A stretch of DNA of 64,000 nucleotides from Guillardia theta CCMP2712 (Eukaryota > Protista > Cryptophyta): assembly GCF_000315625.1 (NCBI RefSeq), contig NW_005434648.1:676236-740235 (forward strand), read 5' to 3'. The position numbers were made by a program, and so were the translations under genes. Below the pieces are notes generated by a model that was not told where the DNA came from, ran no database searches, and saw only the letters and a list, made by a program, of their open reading frames with translations. The number at the start of each line of letters is the position of its first letter. Within the stretch, counting starts at the first letter, position 1. This document shows, piece by piece, positions 54,911 to 64,000 of the stretch.

Positions 54911-57450
54911 TCATTGCATAGATCGCAGTCGCTTCAACCGTACGTGCCTCTTCTTTGTCGCCTCATCATCTTTCGCACCCGAGGAGGAAAGTTTTCGCAG
55001 TCCCTCTATCACCCGAGCATCAAAGTCCTTGAGTTTGTCTACCCGACGACTTGCGTGGCGATCCATCCGCGAGAGGAAGCTCTGCATGTCGTTGCGATTC
55101 AGCCGCGTCCTAGGAGCAGCCCCCAGCATATCCGGCTCGCCCTCCTCCTTAAGCTTCTTGTCCATAAGCTTCGCCTTCCTCTCCTCGTTCCACTTGTTGA
55201 GCCGCTTGCAAGAGATGTCAGTTGCACCCACCGGGAGCGAGGGAGTCACCTCGATGAGGTTGGACACGTCCTTGACGCTGCTGGTCTTCTGTCTGCCTGG
55301 CTCCGTGAATCGGAACCTGGGAGGCAGCTGAGGGATGGCAGTGTTGAGATCTCGTAACATTTCAGTTCGAGACTCGTAGACTTTCTTGCTTCCCGTGATC
55401 TTTATCGAAGATTTTCTTTGGGTTCCGTCCATGCCGAGCTTGCTATAAATCAAGTCAGACATGACGAGCAGGATGGTTGGAACCTGAAGAGCTCTTTCAT
55501 TCCCGGTCTACGAATCTTCACTCGCGTTCCTTCCACATACAGCTTGCTCGCAATCGTCCTTGGCATTGCGATCTCGCTTTCTCCACGGTGAATCAGTCGC
55601 CACTGCCCGGTATCGCACGCTCCTTCCCTGGAGTCTCCGACTATGTGCGCATCGTCTTGGACGGCAGCAGAGCTTGGTGCGTATTCTTGAGCGTCTTCCT
55701 CCTGCTCGGAGCATGCTGATCGAGATCGCCGGAGGCTGCAGCAGCTGGGTCGCAGCTGTGGCTTGTGGTCGACCATTACACGGATGGTATCGTAGAGGCA
55801 GCGGTAGCAGAGCTTCTCAGTGACGGCGGTAGACGGGGACATATCTGGGCTCGAGTTGATCTCGATCAGCCAGACACGAAAGTCTCGATCGATGAGGAAG
55901 TCGTAGCCGAACAGCTCCGAGCTTCCCTTGCGGTTCTCCAGCAGGTCCTGTGCGCACATGACAGCCCAGATTGAGATGGACTGAAGCTGGGGGAGAATTT
56001 TTTCTTGCCAGACACTCTCCTGCAACTCAGTCACAGGCAGTCCAATAGGGTTGACTGCACCTGCCCCGTCGACGTCAGCCAGTTCTTGAAGGCGTCGAGA
56101 TCCCACATCGATTCGTCTACAGCCTTTGTTGGAGCTACCAACACGCTCAAAGCAAAGCTTACCTCTCCTTTCTTCAAAATCTGACGCTTCTTTCTGCACA
56201 CAATTATTACAAAGATGAGAGAAGCGATCGGTCAGAGTCTCTGAATTGTAGTCGGAGAGAGCAAAGCGAAGGTAACACTCGTCATAGAACCACACAGTGA
56301 GAGGATTCCAGTCGGTTACGAGAATCCACTGACGGATATCAAACTTCTTGTTGTTGATCAGCAGCGGGTTCTCGACGTACTTTTGCACAATCCATCTCTG
56401 CGAGTTAAGGCTACTTGCTCCCTTGCAGTGAGTGGTGAAGGAGAGAATGTCCGCGAGGCTTCTCTTGAGCTCAATCCCTCGTCCTCGAGACTTTCCCGCG
56501 GGTTTGACGATCCAGATATTCTCACCAACATTCATACAAGACTGCGGGTGATGATGAGAGATCCGCGAAAGTGCAGTGCGAGCTCGCGAAGCAAGGCTCT
56601 CGTAGTCTTGAACATGTGAGGAAGGAAACTTTTTGACACTTCTGCTCTCCACGTGCCTAGTGCCTTGTAAGAGAGCAACGAGACTCGATGCTTTCGTCGT
56701 CACGGCACTTTCGCATGTCTCTGCTATTTCTCCTCCTACTACGAAATGCACAGTTTCGACGGGACAAGGCTCTCCAAGGACTTCCGACCATTCTTGGGCA
56801 GACAATCTCGATCTTCCTGCTGTTGAAAGCTTGTCAGACAGGGCTGGTAATAAGCTGAGGACATGCCTGTTTCTTCGTCCTCTTCAATGTCTTCAAGGTC
56901 TATCGCTCGCACCAAGTCTTCACATGCGATCAAAGCCAAGACGGCTTTTTGAAAGTCTGGGGACTGGGTTGAAGGACGAGCGTCTCGAGGAAGCTTGTCT
57001 GCATGAGCAAGAAAGCTGGAGAGGAGGTTTTGAGCTGCGAGATTCATGAAATCTTCAACGAACGTGGCCACATCCTCTGAGTCATCGAGATCATAGCTCC
57101 TAGGAAAGAAGCTATCAGAATCAACGTCTTCAAACCAAGACAACGCTCTCAGGCTCTTTGAAAGTCCAACTTTGGTTGTCACATGTCGATTTTTGGCGAA
57201 GTGATTGACAATTTGATGAGGATTCAGCCTTTGAAAGTCAATTTCTGATGTCTTGACTGTCCATTTTAGATCAAACCCGAATTCATCTTTCTGTGTGCAT
57301 TCTGACCAACCCCGGTCCAGAAGTGCGTCGCGAACTCCAGGAAAGTTACCACAGATGACGAACTTTTTCCTTGTCATGAATTAAATTTGGAATCAATACC
57401 TTCTTGACATTGTTCTTTGAGAAAGAAGAAAATCCTCCTTATTACAGTGA
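54911..57450 (-). CDS. Tubulin glycylase, TTLL3/TTLL8-like
   Basis: VRDALLDRGW, QIVNHF..TTKVGL, FFPRSYDL, NIWIVKPAGKSRGRGI, VQKYVENPLLI, KFDIRQWILVTDWNPLTVWFY, WLIEINSSP. Start approximate. Confidence 0.88.
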
Positions 57451-57794: not shown

Positions 57795-57916
57795 TTTTAG
57801 AGTTTCGGGTTTCGGGTTTAGGGTTTCTGGACCGGGGGTTGTAGTAGTAGTAGTAGTCGATTTTATTAGAATGCTAGAGTAGTTTAGGGTTTAGGGTTTA
57901 GGGTTTAGGGTTTAGG
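57795..57916 (+). repeat. Degenerate plus perfect telomeric-type repeats, tract 1
   Basis: TTTAGAG-TTTCGGG-TTTCGGG-TTTAGGG at ~57796-57823, (GTA)n at ~57841-57857, then (TTTAGGG)4-TTTAGG at 57883-57916. Confidence 0.9.
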
Positions 57917-58043
57917 CGGTTATTCCAGGCACCATGGCGGTTATTCCAGGCACCATGGCTGCACGCGTGGTGTAGGGGAAGCTGCCAGGGCGCCAAGGAA
58001 GCTGCAAGCGAGAGGTTTGTATACTTCAAATAGCTTTCTAAGT

Positions 58044-60169
58044 ATGGTTCTTCAGTATGATGAAAATGTTCGCAACCTGCTGTATCGGAGATCATGCCAA
58101 TACACGCAGAGCGGACTTGTGGATGCCTCTGTCCTCGAAGCTGATCTCGTCGAGAGGGTGAAGAGCTTCGCGAAGCGTTATCCGAACAGCAGGACAGCCC
58201 AGGCTTGCAAGGCTGTGGAGGGATGCACCCCCGACGCTATCGCAGAAGCCATCCGCTCGACATGTCAGCAGGCACGACGTGAGCTTCTCCAAGAAGCGAT
58301 GACTGGATGGAGTGACGCATCCAGAGAGTGGTTTATGCAGCAGATTGAAGAAGCCAAGAAAGAGAAGGTCGAGACATACACCGCCTCAGCAGGCAACGAG
58401 GTGACTTCCTTCATCTCCATGACTCTCCTGGGCATCTCCTCGGTGTATGTCAACCATGAAGAGAAGCTGAAGAAGAAATTTGAAGAGATCGGACTGATCG
58501 TAGACTCAGTGCAAGAGAGTAAAGCAATCATGTGGAAGGCTCCGTATAGACCCGAGATAGCGAGTGCTGAGGAGATCCCGGTGACTGTTTCCTTCCTCCG
58601 CAATGCACAAGCGGAGAAGCTCTGGCAGGGAAGAGAGGACTTCGCGATCGATGGTCGCAAGTTCACAGCTGTACATGTGAGCATCGTGCACGATCGATCT
58701 TTCAAGATTCGAGCCAAGAGAGGACCCTGGGGCAAAGGGGGCAGCTTGGCAGAGCTGACTCACCTGCTAACCTTGGGCGGCATGACAACGGCTGAGATAG
58801 CTGCCGTCTATCGCTATCAGCTGCTGCGCCAGTCCCTTGCAGCGGTCCAACTCCAGCCGCTGGCAGGCATGCTGGTCGCTGGGGCGCCAGGACAGCAAGT
58901 CCACAAAGGCTTAGGTCAGAAAGGCTTCATCGCTGTAGGGGCCAACGTCATCTGGAGACAGAGGGAGGTGGAGTGGATCGTCTCCTCGAGCTGCCCAGAG
59001 GCGAATGATACAGCATTTCGAGCTTTCCGAGAGAGCGAAGCGATGGAGGGAGTACACCTGACTCTGTTCAGCGAGGACCCGAAGATCAGAGAGGCGCTCG
59101 CAGTCGAGTTGACAGCTGATCGCTTTGTGTCCAGAAATAAGTTGAAGAAGGCATCAAGGATGCAGAAGAAGGCAGGCGGCAAGGACGGCAAGGAAATCAA
59201 GATCATCATCAAGTCGACGGCGGCATCTGGTCGCTTCACGAGGAAGGAGATGGAGGGGCTGTGCAACGGCGGCAACACGTCTATCGCAAGAGTCAAGAGA
59301 GTCTTGTTGGAGATCGCTAACAGGCTCGAGATCAACGTTGAAGGCATCGACATGGAGGAGGATTTGAACACCAAGTCCTGGAACGGGTCCAAGCTATGCA
59401 TCCTCCTCGGCTCCACGGAGGATGCTCGACGCATGATGAAGGAGCTGCCCTTCTATCTCGAAGGCGCAGCAACCAAGCTCGAAGCAGTCGGCTTCGACAA
59501 GGAGCCTGACTCTGAGGCGGCTGGTCAGCGGGGCACCAGCGACGCAGCGCAGCGACAGGAGGAGAGCGAGGGAGAGTGGCTGGAGTTTACAGACCTGGAG
59601 AGGATCACAATGGAGGCAGCATCTCCGTCAAGCCAAGGGGACATGCAGCTCGTCAGCGAGCTGTCAGCAGTCATCGAAGAGGCAGCTTCTTTGAACGAGG
59701 CAGGGACGAGCGAGCCGATCAAGCTGGTCCTGGACAAGGCCGTTGGCAACCTCCACGACACGTTCTACTCTCCGGGGAGCCTGGAGTTCATGTCGCTGGG
59801 AGAGTGGGCGAAGATGCCAACGTTCTCAAGGAGAAGCTGGGGAAGTGGCTGCAGAGCAAGCGCTGGACTCGCGTGCAAGGAGAGAGCAAGAAGGCAAGGA
59901 GGGGCAGCGCGTTCTCGCCACGGGCAACGGCAGCTGCTGAGCTTGAGCAGGAGGCGGAGAGCGACGACATAGAGCGTCGATCTCTTAGCTTCCTGTTCAT
60001 AGCACTGAGTAAATTCGCAGAGATGCATGTGCTGGCCTGCTCGCTGAAGGTGGACAAGAAGGACCGACTGCGAGTGGAGATGAGGGAAGATGACGAAGAA
60101 GAGGAAGACATGGAGGAAGAGCAAGGCGAGGGCGAGGAAGAAGACGGGGCGAGCCCGTACCGAGCTTGA
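58044..60169 (+). pseudogene. ORF1 of unit 1, with a frameshift near 59810
   Basis: Homology to the unit 2 ORF1 runs in the 58017 frame up to SLGEWA, then continues in the -1 frame (LKEKLGKW..SAFSPR..FLFIALSKF) to the stop at 60169. Confidence 0.75.
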
Positions 60170-60194
60170 GCTGAGCTCAAGGTAAGGAGAGAAG

Positions 60195-60356
60195 GTAGGA
60201 GGCGACCGAAGGCCAAGGTGAGGAGAGGCAACTCTCCTGACTGAGGCTGAGGAAGCTGAATGGAGGAGGAGTAGGGGGCGACCGAAGGCCAAGGTGAGGA
60301 GAGGCAACTCTTCTGACTGAGGCTGAGGAAGCTGAATGGAGGTAGAGTAGGTGGCG
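60195..60356 (+). repeat. 76-nt tandem repeat x2 plus a truncated third copy
   Basis: GGCGACCGAAGGCCAAGGTGAGGAGAGGCAACTCT.. at 60201 and 60277; the third copy GTAGGTGGCG runs into GGTTTAGGG. Confidence 0.9.
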
Positions 60357-60388
60357 GGTTTAGGGTTTAGGGTTTAGGGTTTAGGGTT
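60356..60388 (+). repeat. Telomeric-type repeat tract 2, GGG(TTTAGGG)4TT
   Basis: Directly visible. Confidence 0.95.
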
Positions 60389-60460
60389 CCTTATTTCCTG
60401 GCAGGTTCCTTATTTCCTGGCAGGTTCCTTATTTCCTGGCAGGTTCCTTATTTCCTGGCA
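60385..60460 (+). repeat. 19-nt tandem repeat GGTTCCTTATTTCCTGGCA x4
   Basis: Copies at 60385, 60404, 60423 and 60442. Confidence 0.95.
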
Positions 60461-60535
60461 TGCAGATTTGCGGTACCCCTGCGCTGGTGGAGTAAGAGCC
60501 GCCAGGAACGACGGAAGCTTGGGAAACCATTGAGA

Positions 60536-62683
60536 ATGCTCCGAAGCATGTGGCCAATATCTATTGTGAACCCTGACGAGATCGTGCAGTACCGTACCTC
60601 CAGCTACCTCAAGAGGCAGACGGAAACTGGAACGATGCCGTCACCAGCTGAGCTTGTGCGACGACTGGATGACTTCGCAAGGCAGAATCCCAAAAGCAGG
60701 ACGAGCAAAGCTCTGAAAGCCAAAGAGATATCCTTGGAAGCCTTAGCCGAAGCCATCAGTCACACATGCAGCTTTGCTGAACCTTCACCACTGGAGAGTC
60801 TGAAAGGTCTCGGGCAGTGGGGTGATGATGCCAGGCAGTGGTACCTGTCCGAATTTCTAGCAGACAGGCAACGGCAGATGGAGGCCAGGTCTTATGATGA
60901 CCAGGGCACGAGTGTGCAGACGATTACCATGAAGGTACTAGGGATACCTGCATACTTCTCCAGACAGGTTGAAAACTTATGCGTCAAGCTGGAAGAGCAA
61001 GGCTTGATCGTAGATCAGACGCAAGACAGCAGGAGTTTGATCTTCAAGGCTCCCCTCAAGCCTGACCTGGCGAAGGCAGAAGAGATCCCAGCAGTGATCA
61101 CCTTTGTCCGCAACGAGGCGGCAGAGAAATTCTGGAAAGGAGAAGGTACCTTTAAGGTGGCTGGAAGGAGGATCCTAGCAGTGAACCCAGCAGCCAACCC
61201 ACCGATCTCGTTCAAGATGCGACCAAAGAAGGAGAACATGGGCAGAGTCGGAATCCTAGCGGAGGTGGCCCAACTCCTTAAGCTCAATGATTCGAGTACA
61301 GGTGATATATGTGAGATCTACAGGCAGTTGTGCTTGAAACAGGGCCTAGCAATTATCGACCTGATCCCAAACGCGGGAATGACAGTGAACCTCCCCCCCA
61401 AGAGGAACCTGCCGCCAAAGAAGGTGTTTGCAGCGGTAGGAATAGACACAGTCAACCAGAACAGAGAGGTAGACTGGATCGCGACTTGTTCGAGCCTGGA
61501 AGTAGCGGACATCGTCCTCCAGGCATTCGATCGACATGGAAAAGATCGAGCAGGAGTCACTTTGGGATTGGTCTCAGAGAATGACAAAATACTGAAATGG
61601 TTTTCAGTTCAAATGGAAGCAACGACTATGCTCAAGCATACGAAGAATGCTGTGCGACAGGAGGCGGCAACGGCAACGGGGGCAGAGATGCTGTACTCAG
61701 TGCAAATCTCCTCCCCAGTGCCATCAGGGAAGTTCTCTCGAAGTGAGATTGAAAAAATCTGCGCCAGTGACGAAACGGGCAGAGCCAAAGTCATCCGAAA
61801 CATCCGGAGGTCTGTCGCATGCTGGGACCCACAGGTTGAAAAAGAGCTGCAACGGGTACACATCCAATGTGACGCAGAGACGGGGATGTGGGATGGGTCT
61901 GGAATTATTCTCAGGCTACGAAGTGAAAGGAGTGCAAGAAAGATGATGGCTGAATTCCCCACACACCTTCTCTGCTGGCAAGGCACAGTTGAGATCCAGA
62001 CGACAGCAAGTAGTCTGAACCTCAAAGTGTCGCCTCAGGCAACACAGGATCAATCTGACCAAGCCAGATCACAAACGCCGGGAACCAGAGCAGGCGGAAC
62101 CGTGTGGAAAGAGATTGAACTGAACTCAATCATCAACGAAACAAACCTGCCCGACGCGGAAGCAGAGGTAGTAATTGCTGAGATCAAGACAGCTATCGCG
62201 GAAGTAGTTAACAATGACCTACAACAGCAAGGAAAGACCTTACTTCGTCTTGACGATGCTGTGCACGACATGCAGGTCGCCTTAGACAGTCCAGGCAACG
62301 CGTCCTTCTCCACGCTGCAAGAATGGGCTGATAAAGGCACTGGAGCGACATGGGATACCCAGAGTAAGGGCTTCAAAGAGCGAGTCCAACGAATCGTTGA
62401 GAAGCATACATGGAAGGTCGCGAAGCGCAAGCAAAGCGCTTTTGCCCCCAAAGAAGAGAAGCAGTTTAAGACTGACCTGCTCTTCATTGCATTGAATAAA
62501 TTCCTAGAGGAGACAGTAATCTCTTCGGTAGGAATGCTGGGAGATAACGACGAACTAAAGTTCATGTTGAGCACTGAACTACAGATGAAAGAGGCCGGAA
62601 TGGAAGAGGAACCGGAGGAAGGGAGCAAGGCGGACGACGCAGAGGGGATGTCACTAGACTCCCCCCCTGCGGCACAAGCTTAA
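60536..62683 (+). CDS. ORF1 of unit 2 (~715 aa, putative RNA-binding/gag-equivalent)
   Basis: Intact intronless ORF, collinear with the unit 1 ORF1 (EEQGLIVD/EEIGLIVD, KAEEIPA/SAEEIPV, QNREVDWI/RQREVEWI, SGKFSRSE/SGRFTRKE, LFIALNKF/LFIALSKF). Confidence 0.85.
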   Translation: MLRSMWPISIVNPDEIVQYRTSSYLKRQTETGTMPSPAELVRRLDDFARQNPKSRTSKALKAKEISLEALAEAISHTCSFAEPSPLESLKGLGQWGDDARQWYLSEFLADRQRQMEARSYDDQGTSVQTITMKVLGIPAYFSRQVENLCVKLEEQGLIVDQTQDSRSLIFKAPLKPDLAKAEEIPAVITFVRNEAAEKFWKGEGTFKVAGRRILAVNPAANPPISFKMRPKKENMGRVGILAEVAQLLKLNDSSTGDICEIYRQLCLKQGLAIIDLIPNAGMTVNLPPKRNLPPKKVFAAVGIDTVNQNREVDWIATCSSLEVADIVLQAFDRHGKDRAGVTLGLVSENDKILKWFSVQMEATTMLKHTKNAVRQEAATATGAEMLYSVQISSPVPSGKFSRSEIEKICASDETGRAKVIRNIRRSVACWDPQVEKELQRVHIQCDAETGMWDGSGIILRLRSERSARKMMAEFPTHLLCWQGTVEIQTTASSLNLKVSPQATQDQSDQARSQTPGTRAGGTVWKEIELNSIINETNLPDAEAEVVIAEIKTAIAEVVNNDLQQQGKTLLRLDDAVHDMQVALDSPGNASFSTLQEWADKGTGATWDTQSKGFKERVQRIVEKHTWKVAKRKQSAFAPKEEKQFKTDLLFIALNKFLEETVISSVGMLGDNDELKFMLSTELQMKEAGMEEEPEEGSKADDAEGMSLDSPPAAQA

Positions 62684-64000
62684 TGGACGCAGGAACAGGA
62701 GGAGACGAGGGCAGGTGGGACAATTGGCACAAGGGTGAGGTGGAAGGACAAGAAGGTGAGAAAAACAAAGACAAAGAAAATCAAAAAACGACACAAACAT
62801 TCGACCTAGTAGGGGAGATCCCCTGGAGTCGAAGGGAACAAAACAGAGAATATGGATTAGCGGCGCTACTCAACTCGGGAGAAGCTGGCTTTCTCTCCGA
62901 AGATGTTGTGGAGGCGATAATCCTCGAGGCAAGCGAAGGTATCGAACCATTGGAAGACAGATTTCAAGTAGCATGGCTACGAGACAAGAGGTACGCGAGC
63001 GCGCAAACTAGAAACCAGGTCGAGTCGCCGAGAGGGACTATTGTCCTCCCGAGAATAGTAGCTTGTTTGAGAGATCAAGAGGGGAGGACAAAGAGAGCAA
63101 AGCGACTACTAGCCGGGGCAGCTCAGCCATTCTTATTCCCGTGCGTAGAGAATGGCAATCATTGGATTCTACTAATGGCAGATTTTGACACAAAAAGAAT
63201 ACGCATTGTTGATTCACTCAGCACGGCTGAGAGAGACTTGGGGATTGTCAGAAGTCAAAGGGAGGCACAGTTTCAGCTGGAAGGCGCACAACGAATGGAC
63301 TTAGCCACACTCGCGGCGACGATTGTCACGGAGGCATTCAGCGACCAGCAGGAACATGCAACGACATGGCGGGTTTACCTGTCAACTGAGCTACAACAAA
63401 CAGACAATCACAACTGTGGGATCTTCATACTGTTGCATTTGCTGCTGATCGCAAAGACAAACAGACCGACACAACGAGACATCTCAAAAACAGGTAGGCA
63501 GCAAGGCGTCCCCCCACCCCAGCAATGGCTCGAGAGGATGAGGCACCGGCTGCTGGATGCGCTTTGGGTGGAGGATCCAGGAAAAGCGCGCATGCGAGAA
63601 ACGATCAAAGGCATCTGCAGAGCTTTACAACACGCGCAAGATAAAGGGTACAAGGAATGGCAAGCAGCAGAGGTGACCCAGGCACAAGAGATGGAGCAGG
63701 GAGAGCAAGAACCGTGGCAAGCGAGAAACATGGCGGACCTGCGGACATATGAAAGGTCAGAACAGATGGACTCACTACCGCCGCAGGCCACATCGCTCCC
63801 CCCAGCGGGCAAGCACAAAGAACAAGCTTCGAACGATGTAAGGGGAACTAGGGAGGAGGAGGAGACGCACTCTCCGGCAAGAGATCGAAGGGGAGTACCA
63901 CATCAACTTCAATGGGCCAATAGGGAAGAGGAACAAATACTAACAACAGGTAGAAAACCTCACAATGCAATTCGAACAGAAAGATCAGAGCAACCATCAT
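62683..64000 (+). CDS. ORF2 of unit 2 (partial) with an N-terminal Ulp1/C48-like cysteine protease domain
   Basis: My translation from ATG 62683 is open for 439 codons to the window end: GFLSEDVVEAII..FLFPCVENGNHWILLMADFDTKRIRIVDSL..LQQTDNHNCGIFIL (His 63160, Asp 63211, Cys 63415). Confidence 0.85.
   Translation, partial: MDAGTGGDEGRWDNWHKGEVEGQEGEKNKDKENQKTTQTFDLVGEIPWSRREQNREYGLAALLNSGEAGFLSEDVVEAIILEASEGIEPLEDRFQVAWLRDKRYASAQTRNQVESPRGTIVLPRIVACLRDQEGRTKRAKRLLAGAAQPFLFPCVENGNHWILLMADFDTKRIRIVDSLSTAERDLGIVRSQREAQFQLEGAQRMDLATLAATIVTEAFSDQQEHATTWRVYLSTELQQTDNHNCGIFILLHLLLIAKTNRPTQRDISKTGRQQGVPPPQQWLERMRHRLLDALWVEDPGKARMRETIKGICRALQHAQDKGYKEWQAAEVTQAQEMEQGEQEPWQARNMADLRTYERSEQMDSLPPQATSLPPAGKHKEQASNDVRGTREEEETHSPARDRRGVPHQLQWANREEEQILTTGRKPHNAIRTERSEQPS

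Follow-up and report, generated by a model that had tools for sequence, protein, structure and literature searches.

The stretch of Guillardia theta CCMP2712 DNA analysed here (64,000 nucleotides, referred to below as the window) ends in an alternation of TTTAGGG repeats and long open reading frames, which raises the question of what kind of sequence occupies this contig end and how it came to be embedded in telomere repeats. The original prediction was that a telomere tract, a short tandem repeat, a leader and an open reading frame of about 700 amino acids (aa), all present twice in tandem, mark a telomere-targeted retroelement family with an autonomous and a non-autonomous member. The twofold architecture is indeed seen, from 57883 and again from 60356 onward, and the evidence set out below leads us to conclude that the end of the window is very probably the part nearest the centromere of an array at a chromosome end, made up of non-LTR retrotransposons that are specific for telomere repeats and belong to a Dualen-type pair of elements.

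Structure of the array

The features of the array are listed in Table 1. A pattern of two telomere-repeat units has 8 matches in the window versus 0.03 expected by chance. The tracts had been described as four units of TTTAGGG each; both tracts are present, with measured lengths of 5.0 and 4.7 units. Both elements and all of their ORFs lie on the G-rich strand, in agreement with the orientation first proposed, and the window stops where the contig stops, inside ORF2 of the second element (element B). The transition from unique DNA to the array was placed by eye in a series of degenerate 7-mers, within which TRF reports a period-7 array at 57802-57827; a similar degenerate border is present at another contig end (L013). 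The inverted fragment that follows is unexplained; read as its reverse complement, it is similar to the 3' terminus of a (TAC)n-tailed element in L010. Throughout the genome the telomere repeat has 983 forward and 1159 reverse matches, versus 0 for a control pattern, and it runs in the minus orientation where contigs start and in the plus orientation where they end. A match to the TERT RBD (51 bits) was also found in G. theta.

Table 1. Coordinates of the features at the end of the window
Feature	Position	Strand	Description
Degenerate telomere-like 7-mers	57796-57835	+	border of unique DNA and array; pattern match with 1 mismatch at 57810
Inverted 42-nt fragment	57841-57882	-	resembles 3' end and (TAC)n tail of a sister family
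Telomere-repeat tract 1	57883-57917	+	perfect 7-mers; target of element A
Element A 5' tandem monomers	57915-57959	+	21 bp x 2.1
Element A	57918-60355	+	non-autonomous ORF1-only retroelement; defective copy (22-bp deletion, 3' truncation)
ORF1a	58044-60169	+	ATG at 58044; open to 59972, then other frame to 60169
Element A 3' UTR repeats	60186-60355	+	76 bp x 2.2; end abruptly at 60355, repeat-capped
Telomere-repeat tract 2	60356-60388	+	perfect 7-mers; caps truncated element A, target of element B
Element B 5' tandem monomers	60385-60460	+	19 bp x 4.0
Element B	60389-64000	+	5' 3.6 kb of a Dualen-type autonomous LINE of ~10 kb; runs off contig end
ORF1b	60536-62683	+	715 aa, intronless
ORF2, N-terminal part	62683-64000	+	439 codons, open to window end
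C48/Ulp1 protease domain	~63136-63480	+	part in window; PF02902 match in sister copies

The ORF1-only element

Element A, which is about 2.7 kb long when complete, is represented by at least 42 copies that are 97-99% identical, and in none of these is it followed by ORF2. The number of its 5' monomers varies in other copies from 1 to more than 10; these monomers are a candidate internal promoter, a role that we infer. Between the monomers and ORF1 there is a leader which is related in the two elements. ORF1a is intronless and is continuous in sister copies, but in the window copy a 22-bp deletion after 59817, private to this copy, causes a frameshift at 59817/59818. The window copy also lacks the final ~260 nt of the family 3' UTR, which is present in full, with a (TAA)n tail, at other loci. 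Because it carries both the private deletion and the 3' truncation, the window copy of element A is, judging by these lesions, dead. The claim that an intronless ORF1 of about 700 aa occurs twice is therefore correct for ORF1b, while the first ORF1 is frameshifted in the window copy. In the family as a whole, variable sites of ORF1a are distributed over the three codon positions as 23/19/48 (24 copies, p = 3e-4), and this third-position excess demonstrates, as far as sequence variation can, that ORF1a is under purifying selection.

The two ORF1 proteins had been judged homologous yet strongly diverged, and this is borne out by 31% identity over 607 aa (E 2e-83). Homologues of ORF1b are annotated solely as hypothetical proteins of G. 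theta, and hundreds of ORF1 copies are listed under the same description in draft annotations. No Pfam family was found for ORF1, and no ORF1 relative was found in the Atlas (best 0.77). The fold model of ORF1b is of low confidence (pLDDT 63) and its matches are weak (E 6e-4 and worse), but they are uniformly multi-RRM; on this hint ORF1a is predicted to be a multi-RRM-like RNA-binding protein.

The autonomous element

The link from the window to a full-length element B rests on sister copies that are 96-99% identical and lie elsewhere, full copies being found in L011, L012 and L037. In the copy in L013 the 5' monomers are more numerous than in the window. The ATG of ORF2 overlaps the stop codon of ORF1b in the motif TAATG, and the same overlap occurs in L037. 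No RT had been seen in the window at the outset, and RT and endonuclease domains are in fact found only in the sister copies, beyond what the window contains. There the full ORF2 is about 2570 aa long and encodes, in order, a C48/Ulp1 protease, an APE endonuclease, RT, an RNase H fold, a CCHC motif and an R2-like restriction-like endonuclease (RLE), so that the expectation of an RT and an endonuclease in ORF2 is met by the full-length sister copies. An intact ORF2 of 2573 aa is present on a 10.7-kb JGI contig together with ORF1, the TAATG overlap, monomers, tail and repeats; this contig may be DNA or RNA. Open ORF2 frames in the genome reach 2504 aa, and many ORF2 copies are frameshifted. Sequencing runs containing 75-87% of the words were also noted, and that these runs are RNA is only a guess.

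The 3' UTR of element B is structured and ends in a conserved box followed by a (TAA)n tail. This terminal box is common to elements A and B, and the terminal hairpins of the two are similar. Together with the consistent absence of ORF2 from element A, the common box upholds the proposed pairing of an autonomous with a non-autonomous member.

The domains of ORF2 were identified with differing support. RT matches PF00078 (RVT_1) in sister copies with an E of 2e-28, and the protease matches PF02902 (Peptidase_C48) with an E of 7e-7, with its H, D and C present. The APE match in sister copies, to PF03372 (Exo_endo_phos), is barely over the cut-off (25.7-26.3 bits versus 24.5); the domain lies upstream of RT at residues 491-723 of the intact ORF2, with the motifs N, E, D-N and D-H at 492, 520, 646 and 717. 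Across 38 homologues, the C, C, H, C, P, D, R, K and Y columns of the CCHC and RLE region are at least 90% conserved, and the CCHC, PD, E, R and K residues are nearly invariant. A sequence search of the C-terminal piece of ORF2 against the PDB gave no match, and a fold search alone succeeded: the model of the C-terminal 574 aa has a pLDDT above 90 over the CCHC/RLE part, and its best Foldseek matches are R2 retrotransposon proteins (E 1e-9 to 2e-7, ~240 columns, rmsd 3.2-3.3). The RNase H fold, which lies between RT and RLE, has no Pfam match and was recognized by a target TM of 0.6-0.72 to RNase HI. At the catalytic D/E/D/H/D positions of this fold the Guillardia/Hanusia lineage has other residues, while distant homologues keep the catalytic ones; to judge from these residues, the fold is catalytically degenerate in element B.

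Relationship to the Dualen clade

By its domain architecture, element B is a Dualen-clade (dual-endonuclease) LINE. APE and RLE occur together in a single polyprotein, as in Dualen, and C48, RT, CCHC and, on the evidence of the fold search alone, RNase H are arranged in the same order; the RT falls among proteins with this architecture. In the RT tree the element lineage is joined, with 100/99 support, to metagenomic proteins that carry the same C-terminal RLE, and one cluster of these same-architecture relatives also carries SET. The RT region of Hanusia phi is 62% identical to that of the Guillardia element. The tree was built without Repbase Dualen references, the metagenomic proteins serving as a proxy for them. 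Several other placements were considered and rejected. An NeSL/CRE-like element with RLE only was first suggested by the Ulp1 domain and was dropped once APE was found; membership of the R1 clade (SART/TRAS) does not agree with the presence of RLE, C48 and the RNase H fold or with an RT that groups elsewhere; and kinship with MoTeR, which is CRE-like, was given up for placement of the family as a Dualen-clade LINE.

Dualen elements were earlier reported from cryptophyte transcriptomes, and the published cryptophyte element Dualen-1_GCr carries SET (PMC5029228). These transcriptome reports are without genomic context. In a recent survey of repeats, G. theta was reported to have no Dualen (PMC12747079). 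Our literature searches found no description of a cryptophyte or Dualen telomere element. The initial impression that no telomere-repeat-specific family had been described from cryptophytes remains tenable; Dualens as such had been reported, so the novelty appears to be limited to telomere targeting. Nor can that targeting be extended beyond Guillardia, because no telomere-type repeats were seen at the ends of the metagenome contigs of distant relatives. At the sequence level, the elements described here have an ORF1 without similarity to that of distant Dualen-like contigs.

Position and junctions of the copies

Among the long copies of element A, 41/42 are found no more than 25 kb from a contig end and face outward, and the RT copies are likewise near contig ends and outward, with few exceptions. 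Copies that are far from contig ends or point inward were found in C72, C17, C60, C34, C42, C176 and C321. The assembly is a scaffolded draft with runs of N, in which the order within arrays may be partly wrong, and the chromosome ends lack long-read support. The observed placement is that expected of ORF1 copies at chromosome ends, and it excludes the case that would have refuted the idea, namely dispersed, intron-containing ORF1 genes. A constant register at the TTTAGGG flanks had also been anticipated, and all intact (TAA)n tails (12/12) join the telomere repeat in a single register. Of 43 telomere tracts, 28 end in ..TTTAG(G), mostly with a monomer next. The set of junctions included no full array and no end-to-end lineage-2 element.

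It could be argued that the copies represent a subtelomeric family that owes its spread chiefly to recombination or gene conversion, in which the retroelement has long been inactive and has no real target specificity. Conversion could also produce copy identities of 97-99%, some units are fused or rearranged (L061; L007), and the many frameshifted copies of ORF2 would be accounted for. However, each junction is different, with variation in the length of the tail, in that of the tract (2.3 to 41 units), in monomer number and in the order of neighbours, as would be seen after independent insertions, and nearly every unit has telomere repeats on both flanks. With intact ORF2 frames of 2500 aa in existence and ORF1a under purifying selection, we consider spread by recombination or conversion very unlikely as the main explanation.

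Proposed mechanism of insertion

According to the mechanism that we propose for this telomere-specific family, an ORF2 endonuclease would nick double-stranded telomere repeats at a fixed position in their C-rich strand, and the element RNA would then be reverse-transcribed from its tail, primed by the freed 3'-OH (target-primed reverse transcription). Both the nick site and the endonuclease that acts there are inferred. Since a nick in the C strand primes RT from the tail, the sense strand would become continuous with the G-rich strand, with the 3' end of the element tipward. Element A would be copied in trans by the ORF2 protein of element B, and this trans-mobilisation is again an inference.

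Terminal arrays with telomere repeats between the units might also be built by endonuclease-free addition to chromosome ends with the natural 3' overhang as primer, in the manner of HeT-A/TART and telomeric Penelope-like elements. Priming by a G-rich 3' overhang, however, would put the antisense strand on the G strand and the 3' tail centromere-ward, whereas the sense strand is observed to be the G strand, with tails outward in 41/42 copies. Because the sense strand is G-rich and the tails face the contig end, the definition of an end-attaching class is not met. The motifs of both endonuclease domains are retained, and the fixed 3' register (12/12) fits a defined nick, which leaves end-addition scarcely credible.

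At least 7 copies are 3'-truncated and repeat-capped in varying registers, of which there are at least five. Under target-primed insertion into telomere repeats, these would be explained if telomerase, for which a TERT gene is present, goes on adding repeats. An end that has eroded into the outermost element would be re-capped by telomerase, leaving a 3'-truncated copy followed by repeats in an arbitrary register, and new insertions would go into the newly added tract. This cycle of erosion and healing is inferred. The truncations may instead have arisen by internal initiation of RT, where sites inside the RNA micro-anneal to the nicked strand. Such initiation, at sites that resemble the repeat, has been documented for SART1Bm and SART1 mutants (PMC7265360), and 1-2 bases of microhomology are seen at some truncation junctions. 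A fixed nick, however, predicts the register of the intact tails, and the varying registers of the truncated copies are those expected if telomerase aligns on arbitrary broken ends. Internal initiation is accordingly an unlikely source of the truncations, although it retains some plausibility.

Comparison with other telomeric elements

SART1 of Bombyx mori, an R1 element, has two ORFs with a UAAUG overlap, as in element B, and here too telomere repeats coexist with elements. SART1 likewise inserts into the telomere repeat so that its sense strand runs on into the G-rich strand, and its tail is joined immediately ahead of the run of G in the repeat unit (PMC7265360). It belongs to another LINE clade, however, has the APE nuclease alone, ends in poly(A) instead of (TAA)n, and is without protease, RNase H fold and RLE. 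Chlamydomonas Dualens, in contrast to the strict telomere-repeat targeting in Guillardia, are reported to be dispersed or near centromeres and to have long target duplications (PMC9977147, PMC8226300). The Guillardia element further differs from Dualen in its separate ORF1 of ~715 aa, in the loss of the RNase H catalytic residues and in the lack of SET, and the system differs in having an ORF1-only, non-autonomous partner.

The Jockey elements HeT-A, TART and TAHRE of Drosophila also form terminal head-to-tail arrays, and HeT-A, like element A, is a gag-only (ORF1-only) element whose ORF1 is under selection and which depends on an RT-encoding partner, a dependence that for element A is inferred. 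In Drosophila, however, there are no telomerase repeats, and the elements are attached to the end itself with their 3' end centromere-ward, whereas in Guillardia the units are separated by telomerase repeats and a TERT gene is present. In microbes that likewise have telomerase, telomere-embedded LINE arrays are formed by MoTeR of Magnaporthe oryzae (CRE-like, RLE only), Zepp of Chlorella and GilM/GilT of Giardia. MoTeR resembles the present system in that one of its members is autonomous and the other is not, and in the variant repeats found at its junctions (PMC7367193). It differs in lacking APE and in the ORF of its short member, which is unrelated. Zepp and GilT belong to other clades, and none of MoTeR, Zepp, GilM or GilT is known to have two endonucleases.

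Conclusions

Telomere-specific retrotransposons are rare, and they are the main natural models for the ways in which mobile elements and telomerase share or swap the maintenance of chromosome ends. The Guillardia system represents an independent origin in Cryptista and, by the literature searched, the first telomere-targeting case in the Dualen clade. To our knowledge Dualen is the only LINE clade with two endonucleases, and it therefore becomes testable which nuclease gives the sequence-specific first-strand cleavage. The footprints of erosion and re-capping suggest that the array grows at the very tip, and the system includes, as HeT-A does in Drosophila, a gag-only passenger under selection. 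A bolder reading is that telomerase and a domesticated-like Dualen pair jointly build the chromosome ends, the elements inserting only in the outermost tract, with one endonuclease for each strand, buffering erosion and making up most of the terminal DNA of G. theta. We regard this as doubtful, though possible; if true, a new eukaryotic supergroup would provide an intermediate, based on telomerase plus retrotransposons, between the canonical state and that of Drosophila.

Structure of the terminal array

The layout claimed by the original prediction, in which telomere tract, tandem repeat, leader and ORF1 occur twice, proved accurate (see table). Chance alone would give 0.03 matches of the two-unit pattern of the 7-mer telomere repeat TTTAGGG across the window; there are 8, every one located between 57810 and 60386 on the plus strand. 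Two long ORFs, ORF1a of element A and ORF1b of element B, lie on that strand too, each behind a leader. The window (G000:C26:676236-740235) runs to the very last base of its contig. With 31% identity over 607 aa (E 2e-83), the two ORF1s are homologous yet strongly diverged, as had been claimed.

Features of the array in the window and domains of P0001, the intact ORF2 protein
Feature	Position	Strand	Basis
Telomere tract 1	57882-57916	+	5.0 units, Tandem Repeats Finder
Telomere tract 2	60356-60388	+	4.7 units, Tandem Repeats Finder
Element A monomers	directly after tract 1	+	21 bp x2.1, Tandem Repeats Finder
Element B monomers	directly after tract 2	+	19 bp x4.0, Tandem Repeats Finder
ORF2 C48	residues 159-274 of P0001		Pfam
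ORF2 APE	residues 491-723 of P0001		Pfam
ORF2 RT	residues 1213-1470 of P0001		Pfam
ORF2 zf-RVT	residues 2353-2395 of P0001		weak Pfam match

On the minus strand at 55450-57377, next to the array border on its inner side, are ORFs of 451 and 212 aa that presumably represent the final unique gene ahead of the chromosome-end array. The array base holds a 42-nt piece (57841-57882, minus strand) which, in reverse complement, is the 3' end of a sister family with a (TAC)n tail in place of (TAA)n. At another locus, L010 (178-528 and about 1100-1175), the 3' end of this family is found in the usual sense, with an ORF2 C-terminus of a second lineage (58% aa identity) inverted nearby; the inverted pieces at both places are unexplained. 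Array borders at L013:5190-5320 (contig C214) and L063 (contig C63) contain variant repeats, such as a 15-mer in which one unit is perfect and the other altered, or runs of a TTGAGGG-like variant, which may record older telomerase template variants or decay.

Element B is an autonomous Dualen-type element

The ORF1b stop TAA (62681-62683) overlaps an ATG (62683-62685) that opens a frame without a stop up to the end of the window. Six other contigs contain copies of the terminal 1.4 kb of the window at 96-99% identity, and many more contain a subfamily about 79% identical to it. In a full copy (L011) the ORF2 frame contains Peptidase_C48 and RVT_1, the latter split by a frameshift, while a subfamily copy (L015) has Exo_endo_phos between these two domains. 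An intact ORF2 of 2573 aa (P0001) is present on a 10.7-kb JGI contig, L037, where the whole unit consists of two 20-bp monomers, a 712-aa ORF1, a TAATG overlap, ORF2, a 3' UTR of about 700 nt, (TAA)n and telomere units. Element B is the autonomous member. An RT census of the assembly also revealed a second autonomous lineage, with an RT about 60% aa identical and open frames up to 2504 aa, at contig ends and mostly outward (e.g. C15:1041782-1043014(+), C64:6019-7251(-), C7:13680-14912(-)).

With the C-terminal 624 residues of ORF2 as query, an exhaustive HMMER search identified 106 relatives, most of which align over the final ~250 residues only. An alignment of 38 of them shows at least 90% conservation of a C-x2-C-x8-H-x4-C finger, of a PD motif with an R about 18 residues beyond it, and of a K together with a Y farther along. 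An AlphaFold model of residues 2000-2573 has pLDDT >90 across the finger/endonuclease part; among its Foldseek matches, R2 retrotransposon proteins rank first (E 1e-9 to 2e-7, ~240 columns, rmsd 3.2-3.3), ahead of RNase HI structures (target TM 0.6-0.72). From the Pfam matches, the conserved motifs and the Foldseek matches we infer the order protease, APE, RT, RNase H fold, CCHC, RLE. Full copies thus contain the RT and endonuclease domains anticipated for ORF2, RT and APE by Pfam and RLE by its motifs and R2 fold.

Long relatives have the same domain set, including a canonical RNase H; SET and Tudor domains are additionally present in one cluster. The RNase H catalytic residues are replaced in the Guillardia/Hanusia lineage but kept in distant relatives; the APE, C48 and RLE motifs of this lineage are intact. 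An RT tree, built without Repbase reference sequences, groups the lineage with RLE-bearing proteins (support 100/99), apart from L1-like and I/Jockey-like LINEs. According to PMC9977147, only the Dualen clade combines APE with RLE, and the cryptophyte Dualen-1_GCr, reconstructed from transcriptomes without genomic context, contains SET, C48, APE, RT, RNase H, CCHC and RLE (Lescot et al., PMC5029228). ORF2 is a Dualen-type polyprotein matching this published element. A Hanusia phi relative in EukProt is 62% identical in the RT region; its source, a transcriptome, hints that it is expressed in this sister species.

In four metagenome contigs with distant Dualen-like relatives (L069-L072), the 3' tail is a (CAG)n trinucleotide repeat, the 5' end has tandem 8-mers, and ORF1 and ORF2 overlap by 4 nt; one has SET plus Tudor at its N-terminus, and at none of their ends were telomere-type repeats seen. 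ORF1 has no Pfam family, no Atlas relative and no homologue found outside the Guillardia lineage, and it shows no similarity to the ORF1s of L069-L072. All fold matches of a low-confidence ORF1 model (pLDDT 63) are to multi-RRM proteins and are weak; an RNA-binding role is plausible but has not been shown.

Element A is an ORF1-only passenger

The element A unit in the window measures 2.44 kb (57918 to about 60358), and the genome contains at least 42 near-full copies of 97-99% identity, with up to about 300 first-look candidates. No ORF2 follows any of these copies; the element is an ORF1-only passenger, and the proposed pairing of autonomous and non-autonomous members is upheld. Complete copies have about 260 nt of further 3' UTR beyond the 76-bp repeats and finish with a box that nearly matches the one in element B, then (TAA)n; a long hairpin directly precedes this shared box in both elements, with modest z-scores (-0.8 to -2.9). 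The window copy ends inside the 76-bp repeats, without the 3' end of the family, and its ORF1a is broken by a private 22-bp deletion after 59817, a region that is open in sister copies. Among 24 copies, ORF1a has 23 variable sites at first, 19 at second and 48 at third codon positions (p = 3e-4); 43 changes are synonymous and 49 non-synonymous. Purifying selection has therefore acted on ORF1a during the spread of the family.

Telomere specificity and insertion

Genome-wide, the three-unit telomere pattern has 983 forward and 1159 reverse matches (control pattern, 0), and among the matches listed the reverse ones are at contig starts and the forward ones at contig ends. All but one of 42 long element A copies are no more than 25 kb from a contig end and are oriented toward it, RT-bearing copies are placed and oriented similarly, and every intact (TAA)n or (TAC)n tail (12/12) meets the telomere repeat in one register, which bears out the predicted association of ORF1 with chromosome ends. 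Of the 43 distinct tract junctions examined, drawn from about 35 loci, 28 have a tract that ends in ..TTTAG or ..TTTAGG, most then followed by a monomer. Tract length (2.3 to 41 units), monomer number (1 to >10), tail length and neighbour order vary between junctions, favouring independent insertions over block duplication.

Copies far from contig ends or facing inward occur at C72:438710-441147(-), C17:953055-954122(-) (internally deleted), C60:377378(+), C34:243093(+), C42:51843(+), C176:15589(+) and C321:2692(+), and may be scaffold misjoins or real interstitial arrays. N runs are present in L041 and L066, the assembly being a scaffolded draft, and a handful of its copies are inward or inverted; no read-level evidence lies behind the array findings. 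Sequencing runs containing 75-87% of the words of the stretch were found, their RNA origin being only guessed.

Telomere-specific LINEs are a known kind of element. Dualens are already known from cryptophytes (PMC5029228); our literature search, which did not cover Repbase or Dfam, turned up neither a telomere-targeting Dualen nor a telomere retroelement from any cryptophyte, in keeping with the original prediction.

Because the sense strand of the element runs on into the G-rich strand, with its tail toward the tip, we infer that a 3'-OH of the C-rich strand primes first-strand cDNA synthesis. Natural chromosome ends do not provide such a 3'-OH, so an endonuclease nick within duplex repeats is inferred to be required. 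SART1 of Bombyx inserts in this manner, with identical orientation and a similar junction (PMC7265360). Judging from the fixed register, the downstream flank would start with TAGGG, or with GGG if TA belongs to the tail, and the G strand would be cut after TTTAG(G), with either endonuclease a candidate for either strand.

Inferred erosion and re-capping

Truncations on the 3' side with repeats directly adjoining occur in at least seven copies (five of element A, two of element B), and these meet the repeats in at least five different registers. Internal priming at a fixed nick could be invoked for such truncations, but a single register would then be expected, whereas telomerase aligning on eroded ends would produce many. 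A match to the telomerase RNA-binding domain (PF12009, 51 bits, G000:C21:562211-562372, minus strand) implies that a TERT gene coexists with the retroelement arrays. Erosion and re-capping is also the favoured reading of the window itself, where 4.7 repeat units and then element B come after an element A that breaks off at 60355. The many registers of the truncated copies, together with the TERT match, favour a cycle in which elements would insert into the terminal tract, erosion would reach into the outermost element, and telomerase would heal the end.
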